Below, piece after piece: positions 7,346-61,102 of a stretch of DNA of 64,000 bases (position 1 is the stretch's first letter; every line of letters starts with the position of its first letter). Source of the DNA: Podarcis melisellensis (taxonomy: Eukaryota); assembly GCA_964234715.1 (NCBI GenBank), contig OZ174287.1; one strand, given 5' to 3'. The notes under the pieces are model-generated. The model searched no databases. It was not told the origin of the DNA and worked only from the letters and a program-made list of their open reading frames with translations. Both the position numbers and the translations under genes were made by a program.

Positions 7346-7590
7346 CAGTTGTACCTCGGGTTACATACGCTTCAGGTTACATACGCTTCAGGTTACAGAC
7401 TCCGCTAACCCAGAAATAGTGCCTCGGGTTAAGAACTTTGCTTCAGGATGAGAACAGAAATCGTGCTCCGGCGGCACAGCGGCAGCAGCGGGAGGCCCCA
7501 TTAGCTAAAGTGGTGCTTCAGGTTAAGAACAGTTTCAGGTTAAGTACGGACCTCCGGAACAAATTAAGTACTTAACCCGAGGTACCACTG
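7346..7590 (+). mobile_element. Tc1/mariner (Tigger/pogo-like) MITE
   Basis: TA TSD, TIR CAGTGGTACCTCGGGTT; same family at 19746, 45357, 49102 and 62052. Confidence 0.85.
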
Positions 7591-7811
7591 TAGTTTTTAA
7601 AATGATTATGGGGGAGGGAATGAAAAGAGGGTTTCAACGTGTGTCTCCACAAAGCCCTGTACGGTAGGCTATTGTTTCCTTTTTGTGGCTGGGGACCAAG
7701 ATGGGCGAGTGAGTTGCCTAAGGTCAAGTGAGGACTATGCTGGCTCCGTTGGGAAGCTTCCAGCCCTTTCTCCTTCTCACACATTTCTCTTTCTCTCCCC
7801 TCCCCCCCCAG

Positions 7812-8474
7812 ATGCCCATCCTCAAGCAGTCCCCTGTCTCCCACTCCAAGAAGCGGCCGCGTTTGGACCGGGCCATGATCAGCGCCCCCTTGGGTGATTT
7901 CCGGCACACGATGCACATCGGCCGTGGGGGAGATGCTTTTGGCGACACGTCTTTCCTCAGCAACCACGGGGGCTCCAAGGCCAACGGGCTGCCTCCCGAT
8001 GTGTCCCCTGGGGCCTTCTCCAGCCCTGGAGATGCCCGCTTTGAACTGTTGTCTCCCCCCGGGAGTGGGAACGGCATAGTTCAGAGCCCGGCGACGTCGA
8101 CCCCGGATGGCAGCTTCGTGGCCCTGCAGACCCCAGAGAAGGCAGAGCGGCAGAAGCCCTCTAACGGAAGGGACTGGGACCTGCCTCAGAAGTTCCCCTT
8201 GGAGAGCCCCACATTGGAACATGCCGAATCCCTCCTCTCTTTCCAGTTGGACTTGGGGCCTTCCATCTTGGACGATGTGCTGGGAGTGATGGACAAAGAC
8301 TGGGACAGCATCAGAGGGCAGGAACAGGAACCGCTGAGGGTCGAAAGCCCAAAGGGGCACCTCCATCGCGGTGGTGAAGAAGATGAGGAGGCGGCGGAGG
8401 AAGAAGAGGAGGAGGAGGACGAAGGGCAGGGCTACAGTTTTGAGGATGAACAGGATGAAGAGATTGGACTATAG
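7812..8474 (+). CDS. CDC42EP5: Cdc42 effector protein 5 (Borg3), 220 aa, single coding exon
   Basis: MPILKQ start directly after a polypyrimidine tract and cag|; CRIB ISAPLGDFRHTMHIGRGGDAFGDTSFL; BD3 septin-binding LLSFQLDLGPSILDDVLGVMD; ends in IGL as I recall for human CDC42EP5; adjacent to LENG9. Confidence 0.93.
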   Translation: MPILKQSPVSHSKKRPRLDRAMISAPLGDFRHTMHIGRGGDAFGDTSFLSNHGGSKANGLPPDVSPGAFSSPGDARFELLSPPGSGNGIVQSPATSTPDGSFVALQTPEKAERQKPSNGRDWDLPQKFPLESPTLEHAESLLSFQLDLGPSILDDVLGVMDKDWDSIRGQEQEPLRVESPKGHLHRGGEEDEEAAEEEEEEEDEGQGYSFEDEQDEEIGL

Positions 8475-19745: not shown

Positions 19746-19971
19746 CAGTGGTACCTTGGGTTACATACGCTTCAGGTTACAGACTCTGCTAACCCAGTAA
19801 TAGTGCTTCAGGTTAAGAACTTTGCTTCAGGATGAGAACAGAAATTGTGCTCCGGCGGCACGGCAGCAGCGGGAGGCCCCATTAGCTAAAGTGGTGCTTC
19901 AGGTTAAGAACAGTTTCAGGTTAAGAACGGACCTCCGGAACGAATTAAGTACTTAACCTGAGGTACCACTG
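19746..19971 (+). mobile_element. Tc1/mariner (Tigger-like) MITE
   Basis: TA TSD, CAGTGGTACC TIRs, near-identical to the copy at 7346. Confidence 0.85.
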
Positions 19972-21118
19972 TAGTTGGCTCCACCTGTCATTGTCTTGAT
20001 TTACAGCTGCTTTCCTTGCTTTCCATCCTACTAGCCTAAATGGACCCTGCTATTCACCCGTGATCTCACACTTTCCCGCTTTCTCTTTTCAATTCTGCCT
20101 CTTGCCAGGCACACCGATTAACACACCTTGCCGATATGTCTCAGGTCTGTTATTTTGCCCCTCCCTCTACTGTTACCGTTCTGAGCATGCGCACAAGTGC
20201 TTCTGTCCCTGTGCATCACATCACATATTTTCTTTTCTTTTAAACCACCACCACCACCAGTATTTTCCAGGAAGGGCACGAGAGCAAACATTACCCAACC
20301 GCATGGAGTTGTTATCTTGTTTCACAATGGACAAGATCACCTCCACCAGCAGCATCTCTCATATTATATTGCTCTTTTATTTTGATACTAATTGTAAGTA
20401 AGCAGCTTTGGAGGGGAAATCACTCTTGGTTGAATGTCAGGGTATAGATGTGATCATTAATATATGTATACACACACACAGACACACACACACACACAAT
20501 AAAATTTAAATCTGATCTACAGAGACCACTGAATGCAAGGTTTTGTGGGTGAGCAGTGTCGCACCTCCTCTTGTTTTTGAAGCCTTACAGGCCCCTCCCC
20601 AGGTGTTGTTGTTTTAAGGTGGTTGTGGTGACTTTGAGGCAGAGAATCCCTTCCTGGTTCAAGCCCCTACATTTCATAAGACACACCTAAGGGAGAGATT
20701 GCTGTCCGGTTGCTACACCTACAGAACCAATTGTCATCATCTTAGTTGATGTGTTTGACCACATTCCTTTCCCACCTAGTGTTCAAAGTTCACATGTATT
20801 TGCTCAGCCATCCACCTAACATGCCTGTAAATGCATGTCGATATTGCCTTCGTTGTGCTCACAGGTGCGGGTGGATTTAAACCAGACACTTCCTGGTTCA
20901 TAATTCCAACTCTTCAGCAGCACCCTGTGCAAACTTGGTCCCTCATTTCGTTCCCGTTTTTAAAGAACAGCATACCACTTCCCAGGCTCTGATTATTCCT
21001 TAAAGCTGCCCTCCTTATGACCCACTGTCCCAGGAACAGCATGTGAGAACTGGTTACAGTAAAATTCCGTCTTCTAAATAATTTTCTTTCTTCCATAGAG
21101 TAATTCCCATTTTTAGCT

Positions 21119-22546
21119 ATGGCTGAACTGGTTCCCTCCCCTGAGGACTCTCCCACTGACCTCTGTTCTGATACCCCTGTGGAACCACTGGCAGCCCCCG
21201 ATTCTCTTCCAACTGAGCAATCCCTTGCTGAGATCGACCTCCCTTGCCGCTTTTTCCTAGAAGGTCGTTGCCGCTTTGGTTCCCGCTGCCGGAACAGTCA
21301 CCCTGGTGACATGGGAGCTGCTCCTCGTTCAGAAGATGGTGGATCCAACTGCAGTCGTTCTCCACAAGGCAAGAAGCCCCCCATGAAGACTGCGGAGGAT
21401 GTTATCTCTCGTCTCCTCTGGGACCCCCAGCTGCCTGCTGAACATTTTTCTATCGGTTACCTCGATCGGTTCCTGGGGGTATTGGAAGAGCCTTTTACTG
21501 CTTTCTCCTGGGAGGACCTGGCTTCAACTGGGCCTGGCGTGCTGGCTATCCCCAAACATAGGATCCACTATTTCAAATACAAGACTCGCATGGTGTGGGA
21601 CAAGGTGAGCCGCACAGACGACGTCTTTGGGTCTACAGGAAGTGGGAGAACCATCTTGGAGGTGATGAAGGAAGTCGACGAGGCAGCCAGAACCATTGAG
21701 GAAAAGGCTCAGGACCATCCTTCAAATGGAGACAGAGAAAGGGAGATGGGAGGTGTTGGACCAGGGGCAGCTAGAGGCAGCGGAGAAGAGGCAGTCAGTG
21801 GTTCAGCCAGAGAAAAACAGGTGGCCGAGACAGCTGACAGACAGGATGAGCTGGATAATTTGGATGCCTTCAGCATCACAAAGGAAAATGACCCAATAGT
21901 GGAAGAGGAGGAAAACACGGCTTTGCAGAGCAGGAAGGTGGGACACCTTCCGCATCGCAAACAGCGTCCCACCCATTTCATAGCTATCCAAGTCACCAGT
22001 CGAGAGACCTGGGAAGCTGTGAAACTCTTCCAAGGCGCCCTCTCCGAGGTTCAGCCAGGCCTAGAAGAGTTCTATACCCCTTTGCCTACTCTGCACATCA
22101 CACTGTGTCTGCTGCACTTAGATACCTCGGAACACATTTGCAAAGCTGTTACGGCACTCCAGGAACTGCAAGCCAACAGCCAGCGCCTGCTGCCCCCTGC
22201 CTTGCTTCTCTCCTTCCACAAGGTTGAAGCTTTCCATTCTCGTGTGCTTTACTTGTCACCAGCACCTACACCTGGGCTGGGATCACTGGCCCGGACTTTG
22301 GAGGATGCCTTTAACAAGAAGGGCTTGGCAGTGATTCCTCCTCCGGACAAAGACAATTTCCACTTGACCATGGTGAAGATCCCACGGGCAAAGGCAGATC
22401 TACGGCTGCCAGTAGATTCCTCATGGATTCCAACTGTTAATGATTTAGGAACACAGGCTGCAGAGGCATTATGTCTGTGTGAGGTTGGAAAAGGTAGGAG
22501 GACTGACGGGTTTTACACCACGGTTCTGAAAATAGATCTATACTGA
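21119..22546 (+). CDS. LENG9: Leukocyte receptor cluster member 9, 475 aa: CCCH zinc finger, MJ1316 domain and AKAP7-like 2H phosphoesterase
   Basis: CRFFLEGRCRFGSRCRNSH; TAEDVISRLLWDP...GYLDRFLG...IPKHRIHYFKY; RPTHFIAI...LHITLCLL...FHLTMVK; convergent with LENG8. Confidence 0.95.
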   Translation: MAELVPSPEDSPTDLCSDTPVEPLAAPDSLPTEQSLAEIDLPCRFFLEGRCRFGSRCRNSHPGDMGAAPRSEDGGSNCSRSPQGKKPPMKTAEDVISRLLWDPQLPAEHFSIGYLDRFLGVLEEPFTAFSWEDLASTGPGVLAIPKHRIHYFKYKTRMVWDKVSRTDDVFGSTGSGRTILEVMKEVDEAARTIEEKAQDHPSNGDREREMGGVGPGAARGSGEEAVSGSAREKQVAETADRQDELDNLDAFSITKENDPIVEEEENTALQSRKVGHLPHRKQRPTHFIAIQVTSRETWEAVKLFQGALSEVQPGLEEFYTPLPTLHITLCLLHLDTSEHICKAVTALQELQANSQRLLPPALLLSFHKVEAFHSRVLYLSPAPTPGLGSLARTLEDAFNKKGLAVIPPPDKDNFHLTMVKIPRAKADLRLPVDSSWIPTVNDLGTQAAEALCLCEVGKGRRTDGFYTTVLKIDLY

Positions 22547-30744: not shown

Positions 30745-30944
30745 NNNNNNNNNNNNNNNNNNNNNNNNNNNNNNNNNNNNNNNNNNNNNNNNNNNNNNNN
30801 NNNNNNNNNNNNNNNNNNNNNNNNNNNNNNNNNNNNNNNNNNNNNNNNNNNNNNNNNNNNNNNNNNNNNNNNNNNNNNNNNNNNNNNNNNNNNNNNNNNN
30901 NNNNNNNNNNNNNNNNNNNNNNNNNNNNNNNNNNNNNNNNNNNN
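30745..30944. other. Assembly gap (200 N)
   Basis: Run of N; a round length suggests a placeholder. Confidence 0.99.
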
Positions 30945-32961: not shown

Positions 32962-34180
32962 CTGTTGGGAAAGAGGGGTTTTGTGGTGATTCTTTTTTGG
33001 AATTTGGCCTTCAGCCTCCTCCAGGCACAGACTTAAAATGCCATAAGGGAGACTCTTATTATAGTTACTGTGGCCACAGACAGTAAGTGGTACCATTCGT
33101 CTCTGTAAAACTAGAAAGAAACAGCAGTTCCTTTGAGTGAAAGCCCAGCAATAAAGGAGTATTTTAACTATTTGGAAATGCAGTAAGCACTCCCAACTAG
33201 TCAGGACTGGGTGCCAGGTCTTTTATAAGAAAAAAGAAATCTCCTTCCCATTGAAATCAGTGAGACAAGAGTAAAGACACAGCTAACTTATTGCATCAAG
33301 CACCTAAGTGCAACTATCTCAATGTTGATCCAGTGAGCTTTTTGGGTTACTGGGAAGCGCTTCAACTTGCCCAAGGGGGTTCCCTATCTTGCTGATTCTC
33401 CCCTCTAAGCTCTCTCATGTCACTAACCATGCGGGTCTAGAAGGCTCCCAACTCTAAAGAGCAGCTTTTTGGAGGATTCAATGGGCTGCAGTAGGAAATC
33501 CACACTGCACGTGAACCAGTGTGCTGTAGTGGTTAAAAAAGTGTTGGAATAAGACAGGAGACCGCCTAGATTCAAATCCCTATGAAGACCACTGTGTGAC
33601 CTTGGGCCAGTCACCGTCTTTCAGCCTAACCTAACTCACAGGATTGCTTTGAGGGGGAAAAACAGGAAGAGGGAGAACCATTTTCATCACTCTCAGCTCC
33701 TTGGAGGAAAGGTGGTATGTAATGATATGCATGCACGCAGAAAAGAAGCTGTTTGTGTTTCTCAAGAGTCCAAGCCCATATATTAAAACTTTACTAAAAT
33801 GATATCAACAGTTCACAATTCTTGGCTGGATTCAGTGGCTTCTAGTACCATTTCAAGCAATTGACAAGGCTTGACTTTCTTAGCTTTTGTTAGGCTTTTC
33901 CATAAGGGGCCCCCACCACCCAGCAAAGAGGAGAAGGTCAGCACCCGCATGTCTGCAGCATCCTCTCTTCCCTCAACCTATGATGTGAGTCTGGTGATAC
34001 GTGTTTTTCCCTCCTCTAGCGCAGGGGTTGCCAAGAACACTCTAAAAGATGTGGACCAGAACTTCTGTCAGCCCCACTTAGTGGAGCCAGGGGTCTGGGA
34101 TGGTGGAAGCAGCCTTCCAAAGCATCTGCAGGGCACCATGTTTGCTGCTGCTGCTACTGCCCTGGCCCTTAGAAACTCAC

Positions 34181-34463
34181 GTTTCATGCGGTTCCACAGC
34201 TGGTGTCCTTTCTTGGGCTTGGCGGCATCCTGGTAGGAATGCTGCTGCTGGTTGTACTGGTTTGAAGACTGGTTTTGCTGGCAGTGTGGCCCTCCAGGAG
34301 GCCCCCCCTGTTGCTGCTGCCCCCCAGAGCCCATGGGATGGTTGCTATGTTGTGAAGGATGGCTGGGATGTTGCATAGGGGACTGCGGGGGATTGGGGAC
34401 TTGCATCTGTTGCTGTTGGCCTGGGTAGGACATCCCTCCATCTTCCATACCTGGGACTGGAGG
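34181..34463 (-). CDS. LENG8: LENG8 exon (PPVPGMEDGGMSY...AAKPKKGHQLWNRMK)
   Basis: 283 nt, cag| acceptor, C|GTGAGT donor. Confidence 0.92.
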
Positions 34464-35259
34464 CTGAGAGAAAAAGGAAGGTGATTGGCACCATCACCAT
34501 CTCTGGAAGCCACACTCATGGACAGTAAACATTAAGTGTGCAAGGCCTCAAATCAGGCAGGAGTCAAATACACCATGGCTTCACACTTCTGCCTGAAAAC
34601 CTAGAACCCCGGCCTCCCTTTTTCCATCCCCTCTCAGAACTGGGAAGGAAAGTCAGAATCTGTTTTGATCCCCTGGCTGCGCAGATATGTTTCTATGTGC
34701 TGTATTTCTTTTGCATCACACTCCAGTCATTAACTACCATCACCGCAAACTTCTGAAGCAAGAATTTGAAACACCAAAAAACCCAAGTCATACAGACAAA
34801 CTGCACAGCACAATACAGAGCTGGCCTTGCCCACATCCATGGTAGCATCACACCCAAAAGAATTTGGCTGAGTCAGACAAGTTTGGCTAGACATATGGGA
34901 AGGCAAAGAATTAAAGCTCATTTCCTCCTGCTGCCTTTAATACAGGCAACACCCTCTTTTCCAGAGAAGCTGTTTACTATTGGCAGCGAAAGAACAGATC
35001 ATCCAACAGCCTTTCTGTAATCCACCAAGCCCTCGTCAGCTAAAATAGCTCTTTACATTAAGAGATAAGACAGTATTTGGATAAATTATTTAGAAATTAA
35101 ATTTTTATCTGTCCTTTCTAGTGTTGCCTGGCTTATAAAAAAATGCAAGTTTTTCTGGCAAGATTTTGTAAATTTTGTTTAATAAAATGTTCTGTAAAAT
35201 CAATTTTTGACATCTAATTGCAAGTGTAAAAAATTAAATAGAGTTTAGGTATCCATTAC

Positions 35260-48857: not shown

Positions 48858-48938
48858 CTAGGGCAGGAATCCGGTCCGGTAGGGAAGGTCCACTTCTTCG
48901 CTAGCACCGACGTAAGACGCTCTCATGCTGGGAGAATA
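48858..48938 (-). CDS. TTYH1: TTYH1 exon 14, coding in the long isoform (YSPSMRASYVGASEEVDLPYRTGFLP*)
   Basis: ccccatag| acceptor; similar to the recalled TTYH2 end YSPSMRATYLSVADE; TAG at 48860-48858. Confidence 0.82.
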   Translation of the reverse strand, partial: YSPSMRASYVGASEEVDLPYRTGFLP

Positions 48939-49877: not shown

Positions 49878-50865
49878 TACATGACTCTCCCCCAAAGAAT
49901 CTGGGGGAGTGTAGCTAGTTGCAGTTGCTGGGAATCGTAGCTGTGCAGACAACAGTTCTCATGATTCTTTGGCAGGCGGGGGGGGGGGGAGATGTGTTTT
50001 AAAGGTAGTGCATGAATGTGGCCAATGGGAGTCTGCAGTCCAGCAAATTCTGGGGTGCCACAGGCTTCCCATCTCTTCACTGCTTCATCGTTCTCTATCC
50101 ACCGGCAAATGCATATGGCAGACAAGCAAGACACAGGTTGGGGAAAATGAGTTGGCAGAATATGTGAACATTGCCCAAGCATTTCTGCGTCACGTGGCCC
50201 TTTCTTCAGATATTACTAACCAGTGCTGCCAGACAACTGTGGTCGCACAGGATATTAGCAGCATCCAAATTTGCCCTCCCGTCCCCTTTTTATACGTGAT
50301 GTGCTCATTGACCACAGAGTATACCTATTCCTCAACGCAGCATTCTATATTTGGAGACTTTGTTTAACCCTTCAGGTCCATTTTTTTTTTTTAAATGCAG
50401 CGTTCTTGGCAGTTGACAAGTAGTCATTCTGTGCAGCTTTAAGGGAGCAGAATTCCTGTACAATTGCATCAAACTGCTTATACAATACCAGCAAACACAA
50501 TCCCCTTTTGCTTTCCACTGTGTGTATATGGTCCTGTTATAGCAAGAGGAGTTTTTAATGTTTGATGTTTTATCATGTTTTTAATATTCAGTTGGGAGCT
50601 GCCCAGATTGGCTGGGGAAACCCAGCCAGATGGGCGGGGTATGTATGTATGCATGCATGCATGCATGTATGTATAAATAAATAAATAAATATCATCATCA
50701 ACATCATTACATTCTGGCTCACCAGATTTTCAATAGGCCCCCCTCTACTGTTTTCACAGCACAACCATGGCCACAAAACTACAGTGGTTTGTTCTGCAGC
50801 TGTGTGGCCACTGTGTATGACCCTAGTGTGCCACATCTGGGCCCCGTGCAATGTTGCAAACTTAC

Positions 50866-50944
50866 CGAAGGGGGTGGGGAATGGCGGTCGATGAGGGGGA
50901 CGCTCTCAAATCGAGGACTGCCACTGTACGAAGCGCTTTGACTC
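50866..50944 (-). CDS. TTYH1: TTYH1 exon 13, dual-frame: ESKRFVQWQSSI* (phase 0) or SQSASYSGSPRFESVPLIDRHSPPPS (phase 2)
   Basis: 79 nt, gcttgcag| acceptor, TCG|GTAAGT donor; both frames match known TTYH C-termini. Confidence 0.9.
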
Positions 50945-54031: not shown

Positions 54032-54526
54032 TTATGCTCAGGTGGTATATATGTGTAAATAAAACCATATATCCTAAAGTCATGCCAAATCCAGGGCAAG
54101 CACTTGAACTCCTGGGTGCTCTTGCTGCTTGGAGACTGACGTGTGTGCAAGTGTGCGTGTACACACATATATACACAAACATCTCTCCGTGTGTTTGGCT
54201 TTAGAACACAGGAATGACATGCAGGAGTCAGGAAACGAATGAGCAATGGCAGGTAGAGAAATGAAGAAAGCACGACTGGGAATGAGGGTGATGCTGTAGC
54301 AGTAGGCGAGGAGGAGGAGGAGGAGAGGAGGAAGGAAAGGGAGAGGAAGCACTCAGATGCAGGTTGGGAGGGAGGGGTGGGGACTGCCCTCCCTTCCCCC
54401 CGCCACTCGCGCACTCGGATCTGTGCCGGTTGCTGGCCGCTCCGAGCCCCTCCCGCCTCGCAGGGGGCACCGTGACCGAGCGAGCGGGGAGGGGGGGTTG
54501 GGAGGTGGGCGCTTGGGGCTACTCAC

Positions 54527-54718
54527 ATGTACTGTGAGACGGGGGCGTTGGAAATGGGGGGGGCTGAGAGGCGCAGGCTGCCACGGCTGCCCCAGCTTGA
54601 ACAGTGGCTATAGGAGCCGGGCAGGGTGGGCCCGGCCCCCCCCGCGCGCACCGTCGGCTGCCTACGTGCCTGGGGCGTGAAAGGGTCGTCGTCCTCCATG
54701 TCGTCGTAGTCCGAGTCC
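54527..54718 (-). CDS. TTYH1: TTYH1 exon 12, long form (DSDYDDMEDDDPFTPQ-ARRQP...ISNAPVSQYM); short form would end at 54670
   Basis: gtctag| acceptor; acidic DYDD..DDDPF motif; AT|GTGAGT donor; internal CAG|GCACGT candidate donor. Confidence 0.9.
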
Positions 54719-57021: not shown

Positions 57022-57164
57022 CTGTTCTGGAACCTCTTCCACGCCCGGGGCAGACTGCAGACGGCAGTGGTGAAGGAAAGGGCAGAGAGGAAGGAGAAGA
57101 GGAGGAGGAAGAGCAACCCTTCCATGCCATCGTAGCACAGCCCTTTCAGGGCATCCACATAGTC
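57022..57164 (-). CDS. TTYH1: TTYH1 exon 11, TM5 (DYVDALKGLCYDGMEGLLFLLLFSFLSALSFTTAVCSLPRAWKRFQNR)
   Basis: 143 nt, ttattag| acceptor, AG|GTGAGC donor. Confidence 0.93.
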
Positions 57165-57167
57165 CTA

Positions 57168-57510
57168 ATAAAAATAAAAATAAAAATTTTTATTTATACC
57201 CCTCCCTGCACGGCCAGAGCCGGGCTCAGGGCGGCTAACACCAGTAAAATTACAATAAAAATATAATGGGGGGAAAAACCATTTTAAAATACAGGTTAAA
57301 ATACAATTTAAAATGCAGCCTCATTTTAAAAGTAGCCCATAGATCAAAACCATAAGGGGAGGGAAACATAAGGGTCAGACTGAGTCCAAACCAAAGGCCA
57401 GACGGAACAGCTCTGTCTTGCAGGCCCTGCGGAAAGATGTCAAGTCCCGCAGGGCCCTAGTCTCTTGGGACAGAGCGTTCCACCAAGTCGGGGCCAGTAC
57501 TGAAAAGGCC
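57168..57510 (-). mobile_element. L2 LINE 3' fragment inserted at the TTYH1 exon 11 acceptor
   Basis: Encodes RAFSVLAPTWWNALSQETRALRDLTSFRRACKTELF (L2 ORF2 end) with a GTATAAAT(TTTTTA)n tail; TAGG repeated at both ends. Confidence 0.82.
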
Positions 57511-57538
57511 CTAGGGGAAAGAGGAAGGCACACGCAAG

Positions 57539-57546
<8 letters not shown>

Positions 57547-57574
<28 letters not shown>
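57547..57574. repeat. (CA)n microsatellite
   Basis: Direct reading. Confidence 0.9.
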
Positions 57575-57580
<6 letters not shown>

Positions 57581-58496
57581 GAGCAGGGTTAACAGGAGAA
57601 CGGGCCTGCCCAGATGCTCTTCTCAATAGCTTCTTTGGTCATTCTTAAACTCAGTTTCCCTAGAGCAGGGCAGGACAGACTCCAAGCTTGCAGGACCTAC
57701 ATTAAGATTCTTGGAGGGTTTTTTTTAACTAGGACCCTGGTGGTAGCACTCCTTTTGCAACCCACCTTGGATCAGGCCAAGAGCCACCAGCTGAAGACTA
57801 AACTACCAACTCCCGTTTCTCTCTTCCTCTTCTCAGCTGGCAGGATGCTACCTTCTCTAAGCTCCGATGGGCATCTCATTCAAACATACAAAGAGATTCC
57901 CAGTTATCAGGAGGCCATTCTCCTAATCGTTGGCTCCTTTTGATGAACCATCAATTGACTGCCCTGGGTTATTAGCCAGCAATAATTTATTCCGAACATT
58001 GTCACGAGACAATGTGTTGGATGTTCGGAACAGCTGCCCAGCAAGATTTTGGCTGAAACACATCAGTCCTTTGAATGAAGTTTAATTTGGGCAGTTTGAA
58101 TGATGCTGTGCTGATGTACTACAATGGATAAATTTGGAAGCTCTCTTCAGAAATGTCATGCTACGGAGACGAGAGACACCGTTCCTCAACGGCATTGTAC
58201 GTGCTGTGAATGACGGACACGGTATTCGACAAAACTGCTGAAATCATAGTAATTGTTCCAGAATAAAATGTAGGGGTCTTTATTTATTTATTTTGCTTCG
58301 GTGTTGGGGTGGCAGGAGCCGCTCTCCCTGTCTTGTAGTTCCCAGCAGTTCGTATTCAGAGGCATCTTTCAGTGGGAGTGGTATGCAGCCGTAGAAAAAT
58401 GAGAGGTATAGGACAAGTAGGGAGAAAGGGGTTCAGTGGAGGGGCCAGTGAGTGTCAGTGGATCACTTAAAGGAAGAATAAGAGTGTGTGGGTTAC

Positions 58497-58589
58497 CTTA
58501 TGAAGTCCCCGGCAGTTGAGCAGAGCAATAAGGTTATGGAATTTGCTTTCTGTGTTGTTCAAAGTGCTCTGGATAGATAAGATGTTTTT
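58497..58589 (-). CDS. TTYH1: TTYH1 exon 10 (KNILSIQSTLNNTESKFHNLIALLNCRGLHK)
   Basis: 93 nt, gcag| acceptor, AAG|GTAACC donor; N-glycosylation sequon NNT. Confidence 0.92.
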
Positions 58590-58763: not shown

Positions 58764-58856
58764 CTCCGCTGCTGGGAAATGTGGGATGGCTTCTCTTTCC
58801 AATCCGTACAGCTGAGAATGTATGTTGGACAATGCCCTCTGACACATGGTGAGCCT
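58764..58856 (-). CDS. TTYH1: TTYH1 exon 9 (RLTMCQRALSNIHSQLYGLEREAIPHFPAAE)
   Basis: 93 nt, ctgcag| acceptor, GAG|GTCAGT donor; close to the recalled human RLTLSQRALANIHSQLLGLEREAVPQFPSAQ. Confidence 0.93.
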
Positions 58857-60531: not shown

Positions 60532-60587
60532 CTGCTGGAAAGGGTTAAAGACGTCTTGGCTGCAGGTTAAGTAGTATTGCAGGATTT
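60532..60587 (-). CDS. TTYH1: TTYH1 exon 8 (ILQYYLTCSQDVFNPFQQ)
   Basis: 56 nt, cccacag| acceptor, CAG|GTAGGC donor; conserved YYLxC...NPFQQ. Confidence 0.92.
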
Positions 60588-61102
60588 CTGTGGGATTGGG
60601 AAGAAAAGGAAAAGGAAATCAGACCGTGGCTCCCTATCAAGGCACCAGGCTTTTCCCATGCTCCTCCTGGATCCTGTGTTTGTTTGCTCTAACTTGGGTT
60701 TTACATGTTCAAAAAGAGGGTCTCTGCCCTTGATAGCAATAGGACAGGCCATGTGACACATTATGCAGGGATGGGGAATCTTTGTGTGCCCCCCCCCGCC
60801 CAGATGTTGCTGGACTACAGTATCCATCATCCCTGGCCATTGGCCATACTTGCTGGAGCTAATGGGAATTGCAGTTCAGCAATATATGGGGGTCTAGCAA
60901 GATGACATGCAGTGGTGCCTTGGTTTTTATTTCACTGTTGAGTAGCTGCTGTGGGGAGAGCTATGGGGAGCAGTTGGAAAGGGCCACCCTTTCTTCTCTC
61001 ACTCTGGACAAATATTGCCTCCCCTCCCCTTGCAGCAATTATTAACTCCAGAAGCACAGGCTCCCCTATATGCCTAAGGTGGTGTTACAAGAATTGTGGT
61101 GG

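Follow-up and report, generated by a model that had tools for sequence, protein, structure and literature searches.

Two overlapping C-terminal reading frames in one exon of TTYH1 from the lizard Podarcis melisellensis

The DNA in this report is a 64,000-nt stretch of contig OZ174287.1 from the lizard Podarcis melisellensis, referred to in its entirety as the window. On its minus strand, the window holds the 3' half of the gene for the Tweety protein TTYH1. The representative proteins that best matched the window exons in database searches were TTYH1, and seven exons are, within exons, 100% identical by tblastn to Podarcis muralis TTYH1 isoform X3 (P0210), spanning approximately residues 293 to 537 of that 537-residue protein; the 5' half of the gene lies outside the window. 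Single-exon queries matched the Pfam Tweety family (PF04906) for exon 11 (E = 2.8e-20) and exon 10 (E = 5e-8). These Tweety matches, the identity to P. muralis, and the LENG9-like and CDC42EP5-like neighbors together identify it as the TTYH1 orthologue of a lacertid.

Both neighbors lie on the plus strand. The LENG9-like gene is a single exon at 21104-22543, with a 480-codon open reading frame (ORF) that includes a CCCH zinc finger, an MJ1316 domain, and an AKAP7 2'5' RNA ligase-like domain, and the CDC42EP5-like gene is an ORF at 7722-8471 with a P21-Rho-binding domain and a BORG_CEP domain. A 298-codon open frame at 7575-8468, on the strand opposite to the CDC42EP5-like ORF, is probably a compositional artefact. 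The Gln/Pro-rich open segment at 34071-34493 on the minus strand gave no Pfam match; its location might suit an exon of the LENG8 orthologue, which is to be expected between LENG9 and TTYH1, the gene order in the human map being TTYH1-LENG8-LENG9-CDC42EP5. Alligator and bat have a SAC3_GANP gene downstream of TTYH1. The letters at 30745-30944 are 200 consecutive N, an assembly gap or a masked stretch, and a dinucleotide microsatellite in TTYH1 intron 10 (approximately 57480-57620, minus strand) reads CVCVCV... in two frames.

All TTYH1 exons are on the minus strand, and a slash marks splice junctions throughout. The first matched segment is the 3' part of coding exon ~8 (60532-60588; 100% identical to P. 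muralis X3 by tblastn), which is followed after 60532 by the donor gtaggc. Coding exon ~9 (58764-58856; 93 nt, phase 0-0) is an exact peptide match with the acceptor ctgcag and the donor gtcagt; it is included in two of the database proteins (P0002 and P0210) and omitted in Pelodiscus X2. Coding exon ~10 occupies 58497-58589, matched by tblastn to P. muralis X3 and by Pfam as above. Exon 11 (57022-57164; ag/GAC...AACAG/gtgagc) carries the last transmembrane helix, ends in phase 2, and is 100% identical to its counterparts in Varanus and Podarcis.

Exon 12, which begins at 54718, could end at either of two candidate donors. The part common to both isoforms (54670-54718) encodes the acidic DSDYDD...DPFTPQ segment. 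It is followed, after 54670, by the putative 5' splice site of the short form, CAG/GCACGTAGG (54661-54669), a GC donor in phase 0 whose bases are read as Ala-Arg-Arg in the long form. With the acceptor of exon 13 this site gives the layout of a GC-AG intron, CAG/GCACGT ... ttgcag/G; positions -3 to +1, +3, +5, and +6 fit the donor consensus, and +2 and +4 deviate from it. The extension specific to the long form (54527-54669) is an open frame of 143 nt, i.e., 47 codons plus 2 nt, that aligns with TTYH2, and it ends at the second donor, ACAT/GTGAGT, of which GTGAGT occupies 54521-54526. Because the donors are 143 nt (2 mod 3) apart, exon 13 falls into frame 1 when joined to the GC donor and into frame 2 when joined to the GT donor. 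The full-length long exon 12 (54527-54718) begins in phase 2 and measures 192 nt, which is divisible by 3; leaving it out would therefore splice exon 13 onto exon 11 in frame 2. The snake Notechis (P0217) and marsupials have annotated models of this kind.

Exon 13 extends from 50944, after a ttgcag acceptor, to 50866, before the donor gtaagt (50860-50865), a length of 79 nt. Its first 39 nt (50906-50944) can be read in two ways. Frame 1 gives the 12-residue tail ESKRFVQWQSSI followed by TGA (50908-50906), and frame 2, which starts at 50943, gives the first 13 residues of a run of 26 codons that reaches the donor without a stop. The remainder (50866-50905; VPLIDRHSPPPS) codes only in frame 2 and would be 3' untranslated region in the short form. 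Frame 3 is likewise without a stop in the window. Frame 2 continues into exon 14, whose coding part (48858-48938) lies behind a pyrimidine-rich acceptor and supplies the long form's final 26 residues and a TAG stop. The frame-1 TGA ends at 50906, 40 nt before the exon 13/14 junction. An earlier note on this DNA had given these exon 13 coordinates, both peptides, the two junctions into 50944 (from 54670 and 54527), and the 40-nt distance, and all of them proved correct on rereading the sequence.

The two tails resemble different members of the Tweety family. Mammalian TTYH1 proteins of the database, one of them labeled Homo sapiens, end in a C-terminus identical at 12 of 12 positions to the frame-1 tail, as the earlier note had stated for the human protein. 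The same note had likened frame 2 to TTYH2, and the alignments bear it out: exon 13 frame 2 aligns with residues 483-508 of the TTYH2 chains 7rtt_A and 7p54_A (E = 8.5e-4 and 7e-3), and TTYH3 gave an alignment as well. Upstream, the long exon 12 aligns with TTYH2 chains at residues 420-480 (E = 2.5e-8), and its alignment to a human TTYH1 chain covers only its first 19 residues. The exon 14 tail is identical to those of P. muralis X3 and Varanus. Its peptide had no match in a search of PDB sequences; its homology rests on tblastn and on the annotated tails of orthologues. The tail of approximately 100 residues that had been predicted is intact over the three exons and resembles those of TTYH2 and TTYH3 along its course. 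A PPSY motif, of the PPxY (PY) type, is built across the exon 13/14 junction, with the first Tyr of exon 14 completing it; PPxY is kept in the long forms of non-mammalian TTYH1 and is homologous to the PPTY of TTYH2.

We compared exons 12 and 13 at eight non-mammalian loci, namely the window, Varanus, Naja, Mauremys, Alligator, Xenopus laevis, Microcaecilia, and the reedfish Erpetoichthys, together with one bat. In this comparison, of the kind proposed earlier and reaching from reedfish to squamates, the two-frame layout recurs in all eight non-mammalian loci, and exon 13 is invariably 79 nt long, with TGA at nt 37-39, an AG acceptor, and a GTAAGT or GTATGT donor. The 40 nt between stop and junction are the same in 8/8, and the intron between exons 12 and 13 ranges from 1.0 to 6.3 kb. 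The extension of exon 12 varies in length (143, 143, 143, 77, 92, 137, 137, and 122 nt), and it is always open and always 2 mod 3. The long donor is ACAT/GTGAGTA in all seven tetrapod loci and CTACAC/GTGAGTAC in reedfish. Recurrence in eight independent loci places this two-frame layout far beyond chance.

The short donor is equally constant. It reads CAG/GCACGTAG in seven of the eight loci and GCATGTAG in Naja, for an overall pattern of CAG/GCA(C/T)GTAG, and it stays fixed although changes at the A of GCA or at the T of CGT would be silent in the long frame. In Naja naja (L008), where the short donor lies at approximately 41552, GCATGT replaces GCACGT, a change at donor position +4 that turns Arg into Cys in the long form (PQAC...); Pseudonaja shares this residue. 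The conserved G and T could alternatively mark a GT donor 4 nt downstream (GCAC/GTAGG), which would account for their conservation and would bring exon 13 into its third frame. Frame 3 is indeed open in the window, Varanus, Mauremys, alligator, and reedfish, but it contains stops in Xenopus and Microcaecilia, and the corresponding junction is absent from the database proteins examined. All short forms in the database instead read PQ/ESK (HQ/DSK in fish), a junction that needs the GC site; long forms read PQ/ARR...YM/SQS. The downstream GT donor was rejected on account of the frame-3 stops in two amphibians, and we consider it scarcely credible. For the GC donor itself, the PQ/ESK junction of the Xenopus protein Q6AX57, mapped on its own locus (L003), permits only the GC-AG choice.

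Constraint was analyzed in each frame across the seven non-mammalian tetrapods. Within the overlap, all eight variable columns of nt 1-36 fall at third positions of frame 1 (P = 1.6e-5 under uniform placement), with pN = 0, pS = 0.45, and 0 nonsynonymous against 70 synonymous differences summed over pairs. The same changes, read in frame 2 (nt 2-37), are all nonsynonymous (pN = 0.117, zero synonymous), although the replacements are mostly conservative (S/N, Y/F, and A/G). After the TGA the pattern is reversed: in frame 2 (nt 41-79), 11 of 19 variable columns are at third positions and pN/pS is 0.29; the control frame (nt 40-78) gives 1.94. Purifying selection is thus very strong on the short tail and also acts on the long tail where it codes alone, and the phase of codon constraint flips exactly at the stop of the short frame. 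Inside the overlap, frame 2 changes at about the synonymous rate, with a frame-1 pS of 0.45 compared to 0.47 elsewhere. Selection on both frames, which the earlier note had supposed, therefore holds for the whole exon, by way of frame 1 and of frame 2 after the stop, but is not demonstrated for frame 2 inside the overlap. There, only frame 1 is demonstrably constrained on these counts, and frame 2, with no constraint beyond that set by frame 1, seems to absorb the latter's synonymous drift.

These patterns bear on two simpler accounts of the locus. The lizard might make the long isoform only, leaving exon 13 frame 1 as a by-product of conservation in the long frame. The P. muralis entries would agree with this, being either long-form (P0210) or truncated (P0324 and P0325), with no short-form Podarcis entry among the members listed, as would the non-canonical GC dinucleotide of the short donor. 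However, conservation driven by the long frame predicts the opposite of what the eight variable overlap columns show, the position of the TGA and the GCACGTAG donor are kept from reedfish to squamates, and short-tail models exist in at least six other squamates; we regard this account as very unlikely. Conversely, only the short isoform might be functional, with the exons of the long frame persisting as decaying relics. Mammals did lose the long tail, and the alligator RefSeq models within the clusters examined are of the short form only. Against such decay stand the open exon 12 extension of non-mammals, whose indels preserve a length of 2 mod 3, the pN/pS of 0.29 in exon 13 past the stop, the intact exon 14 with its good acceptor, and the identity of the long tail in the window to the annotated tail of P. 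muralis X3. We hold relic status to be highly improbable. The reading that we prefer is that both tails are made, and the first 39 nt of exon 13 would on this evidence be genuinely dual-coding.

Both forms are annotated widely among vertebrates, although most TTYH1 gene models of the relatives are Gnomon predictions. The short tail ESKRFVQWQSSI is invariant at 12 of 12 positions in database proteins of lungfish, three frogs, axolotl, and alligator, and it is the frame-1 reading of the caecilian Microcaecilia locus. It is also present in a turtle X3 model, in the 449-residue X2 models of Crotalus, Erythrolamprus, Ahaetulla, and Rhineura, in further squamate models from Tiliqua (X2, 419 residues) and Phrynocephalus (450 residues), and in monotremes, marsupials, and placentals. 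Ray-finned fishes have variants of it: GSKRFIQWQSSI in sturgeon, DSKRFLQWRSSL in reedfish, where it was taken from the DNA, and DSKRFLQWQPWL in many teleosts. Annotated long tails of the TTYH2/3 type are known from 537-residue proteins of the squamates Varanus, Anolis, Candoia, Heteronotia, and Pseudonaja, as well as from turtles, frogs, caecilians, lungfish (X1), and teleosts.

In several species the two forms are assigned to one gene. The Xenopus laevis ttyh1-A pair consists of a curated short form (NP_001087415/Swiss-Prot Q6AX57, 449 residues) and a long form that is a RefSeq model (XP_018080041, X1, 538 residues). Protopterus annectens (X1 and X2) and Caretta (X1 and X3) have comparable pairs, and many squamates have RefSeq pairs of 537 and 449 residues. 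The frame-switching system that had been proposed has its counterparts in public data, in the PQ/ESK and PQ/ARR isoforms annotated in relatives. The isoform switch is already public at the level of annotation and is not a discovery of this work. A literature search on TTYH1 and dual coding returned no paper that says outright that both tails are encoded by the same nucleotides in different frames; the public gene models imply it. Teleosts also have a third isoform (P0250, P0288, P0290, P0297, and others), in which the short donor is joined straight to exon 14 (HQ/YSPSM...) and exon 13 is omitted; it keeps the last-exon peptide but is without the prolines of PPxY. Further teleost TTYH1 tails end in ...TLPAC.

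The distribution of the tails gives an indication of their age. The earlier note had suggested that the short tail is a mammalian one that arose by overprinting on an ancestral exon. A mammalian origin is refuted by the occurrence of ESKRFVQWQSSI from lungfish to placentals and of its variants in sturgeon, reedfish, and teleosts. Since the short tail is found in both lobe-finned and ray-finned fishes, any overprinting predates their split, and the two-tail arrangement appears to be at least as old as the common ancestor of bony vertebrates. Of the two frames, the long one is probably older, since the paralogues TTYH2 and TTYH3 share it, with the short frame probably overprinted on it. From the genetic code, the TTYH2 residues N-P-R-Y-E would possibly allow a frame-1 reading close to Q-S-S-I-stop.

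Mammals have lost the long tail and kept only the short one. The bat Miniopterus natalensis (L007) has a GT donor, CAG/GTATCC, and a 102-nt intron 12 (19879-19980); the long-specific extension of exon 12 is gone, and frame 2 is degenerate and no longer encodes the VPLI..SPPPS motif. No mammals appeared among the database matches to the long tail. In monotremes and marsupials, models whose exon 13 is in frame 2, through intron retention or skipping of exon 12, are without the PPPSY tail. In our reading, the loss took the form of a change of the donor to GT, deletion of the extension, and decay of frame 2. In the bat, a mammalian tail that skips exon 13 (PQ/FLP...) begins in an exon approximately 200 nt downstream of exon 13.

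The overall explanation that we favor, and consider highly probable, is that the choice of donor in exon 12 sets the frame of exon 13 and gives TTYH1 a tail of either 12 or approximately 100 residues. It draws on the anatomy of the locus, the conservation across eight loci, the switch of constraint at the frame-1 stop, and the presence of both forms in the annotation of relatives. Splicing from the GC donor after 54670 would bring exon 13 into frame 1, and the protein would end after ESKRFVQWQSSI; splicing from the GT donor after 54527 would add 143 nt, bring exon 13 into frame 2, and lead on through exon 14 to the TTYH2/3-like tail. Competition between the weak GC donor and the strong GT donor may set the ratio of the two forms. 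From the conservation and the gene models of relatives, we infer that both junctions are used in the Podarcis lizard.

Three functional consequences can be considered. First, the 40 nt between the short-form stop and the last junction are consistent with escape from nonsense-mediated decay under the 50-55-nt rule, so that the short form would be expected to persist. Second, the switch would exchange a tail with a PY motif, a candidate ligand of Nedd4-family proteins as in TTYH2, for a short tail without the motif. Among Tweety proteins, a tie of the PY motif (PPTY in TTYH2) to Nedd4-2, by binding or regulation, is known for human TTYH2 and TTYH3 only (He et al. 2008, as presented in PMC8950476 and PMC8273234). 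Third, the earlier note had described the -SSI ending as a class I PDZ-type motif. The short tail, which ends in -S-S-I, does fit the class I pattern, [S/T]-x-hydrophobic, but its teleost orthologues end in -P-W-L, which does not, and a literature search for PDZ proteins linked to the TTYH1 tail found no paper making that link, with incidental co-mentions only in the papers checked. The teleost ending and the absence of supporting literature weaken the idea, and we give a PDZ-ligand role little weight.

More tentatively, these elements can be joined into one module, of approximately bony-vertebrate age, in which a GC donor embedded in coding sequence would switch between a Nedd4-regulated PY tail and an overprinted 12-residue tail. 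We put this forward as a possibility that we ourselves rather doubt in its full form; no explicit description of such a switch was found in the searchable literature. If it is true and the PY form disappeared in the mammalian stem, that disappearance would explain why only mammalian TTYH1 goes unreported among the Nedd4-2-regulated Tweety proteins.

For genome annotation the locus is routine, both isoforms being RefSeq models already in sister species. Its value is more didactic and evolutionary: it could serve as a textbook case of a clean, deeply conserved dual-coding exon, with a GC splice donor fixed within coding sequence in 8/8 non-mammalian loci, whose span reaches from a basal ray-finned fish to the squamates. 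Studies of mammalian TTYH1 deal with the short-tailed form only, and the PPxY tail of non-mammalian TTYH1 is one that comparative studies of trafficking and ubiquitination in Xenopus or zebrafish models may have to take into account.

Compared to known systems, the lizard gene is closest to the annotated TTYH1 pairs of squamates, Xenopus, and Protopterus, with which it shares C-termini, junction positions, and exon sizes and from which it differs in nothing substantive. It also resembles TTYH2 and TTYH3, in which a tail built from three exons, like that of the lizard long form, has PPxY at the same place (PPTY in TTYH2, PPSY here); unlike lizard TTYH1, the TTYH2 and TTYH3 proteins examined include no short-tail form. 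Splice variants of the mammalian TTYH1 C-terminus have been reported (Suzuki and Mizuno 2004; Matthews et al. 2007, both cited by PMC8273234 and PMC7158864), and in them splicing of the same gene region alters the cytoplasmic C-terminus as in the lizard. In contrast to the lizard gene, mammalian TTYH1 is without the TTYH2/3-like tail, and its alternative tails come from other exons or from intron retention. The lizard arrangement also belongs to a more general class, in which alternative donors separated by a distance that is not a multiple of 3 shift the frame of a shared downstream exon, with a weak GC donor in competition with a strong GT one. Relative to dual-coding exons and GC-AG introns in general, the conservation of the TTYH1 arrangement is unusually deep, extending across the bony vertebrates, and its GC donor differs from those of GC-AG introns at large in sitting inside the Ala-Arg-Arg codons of the other isoform.
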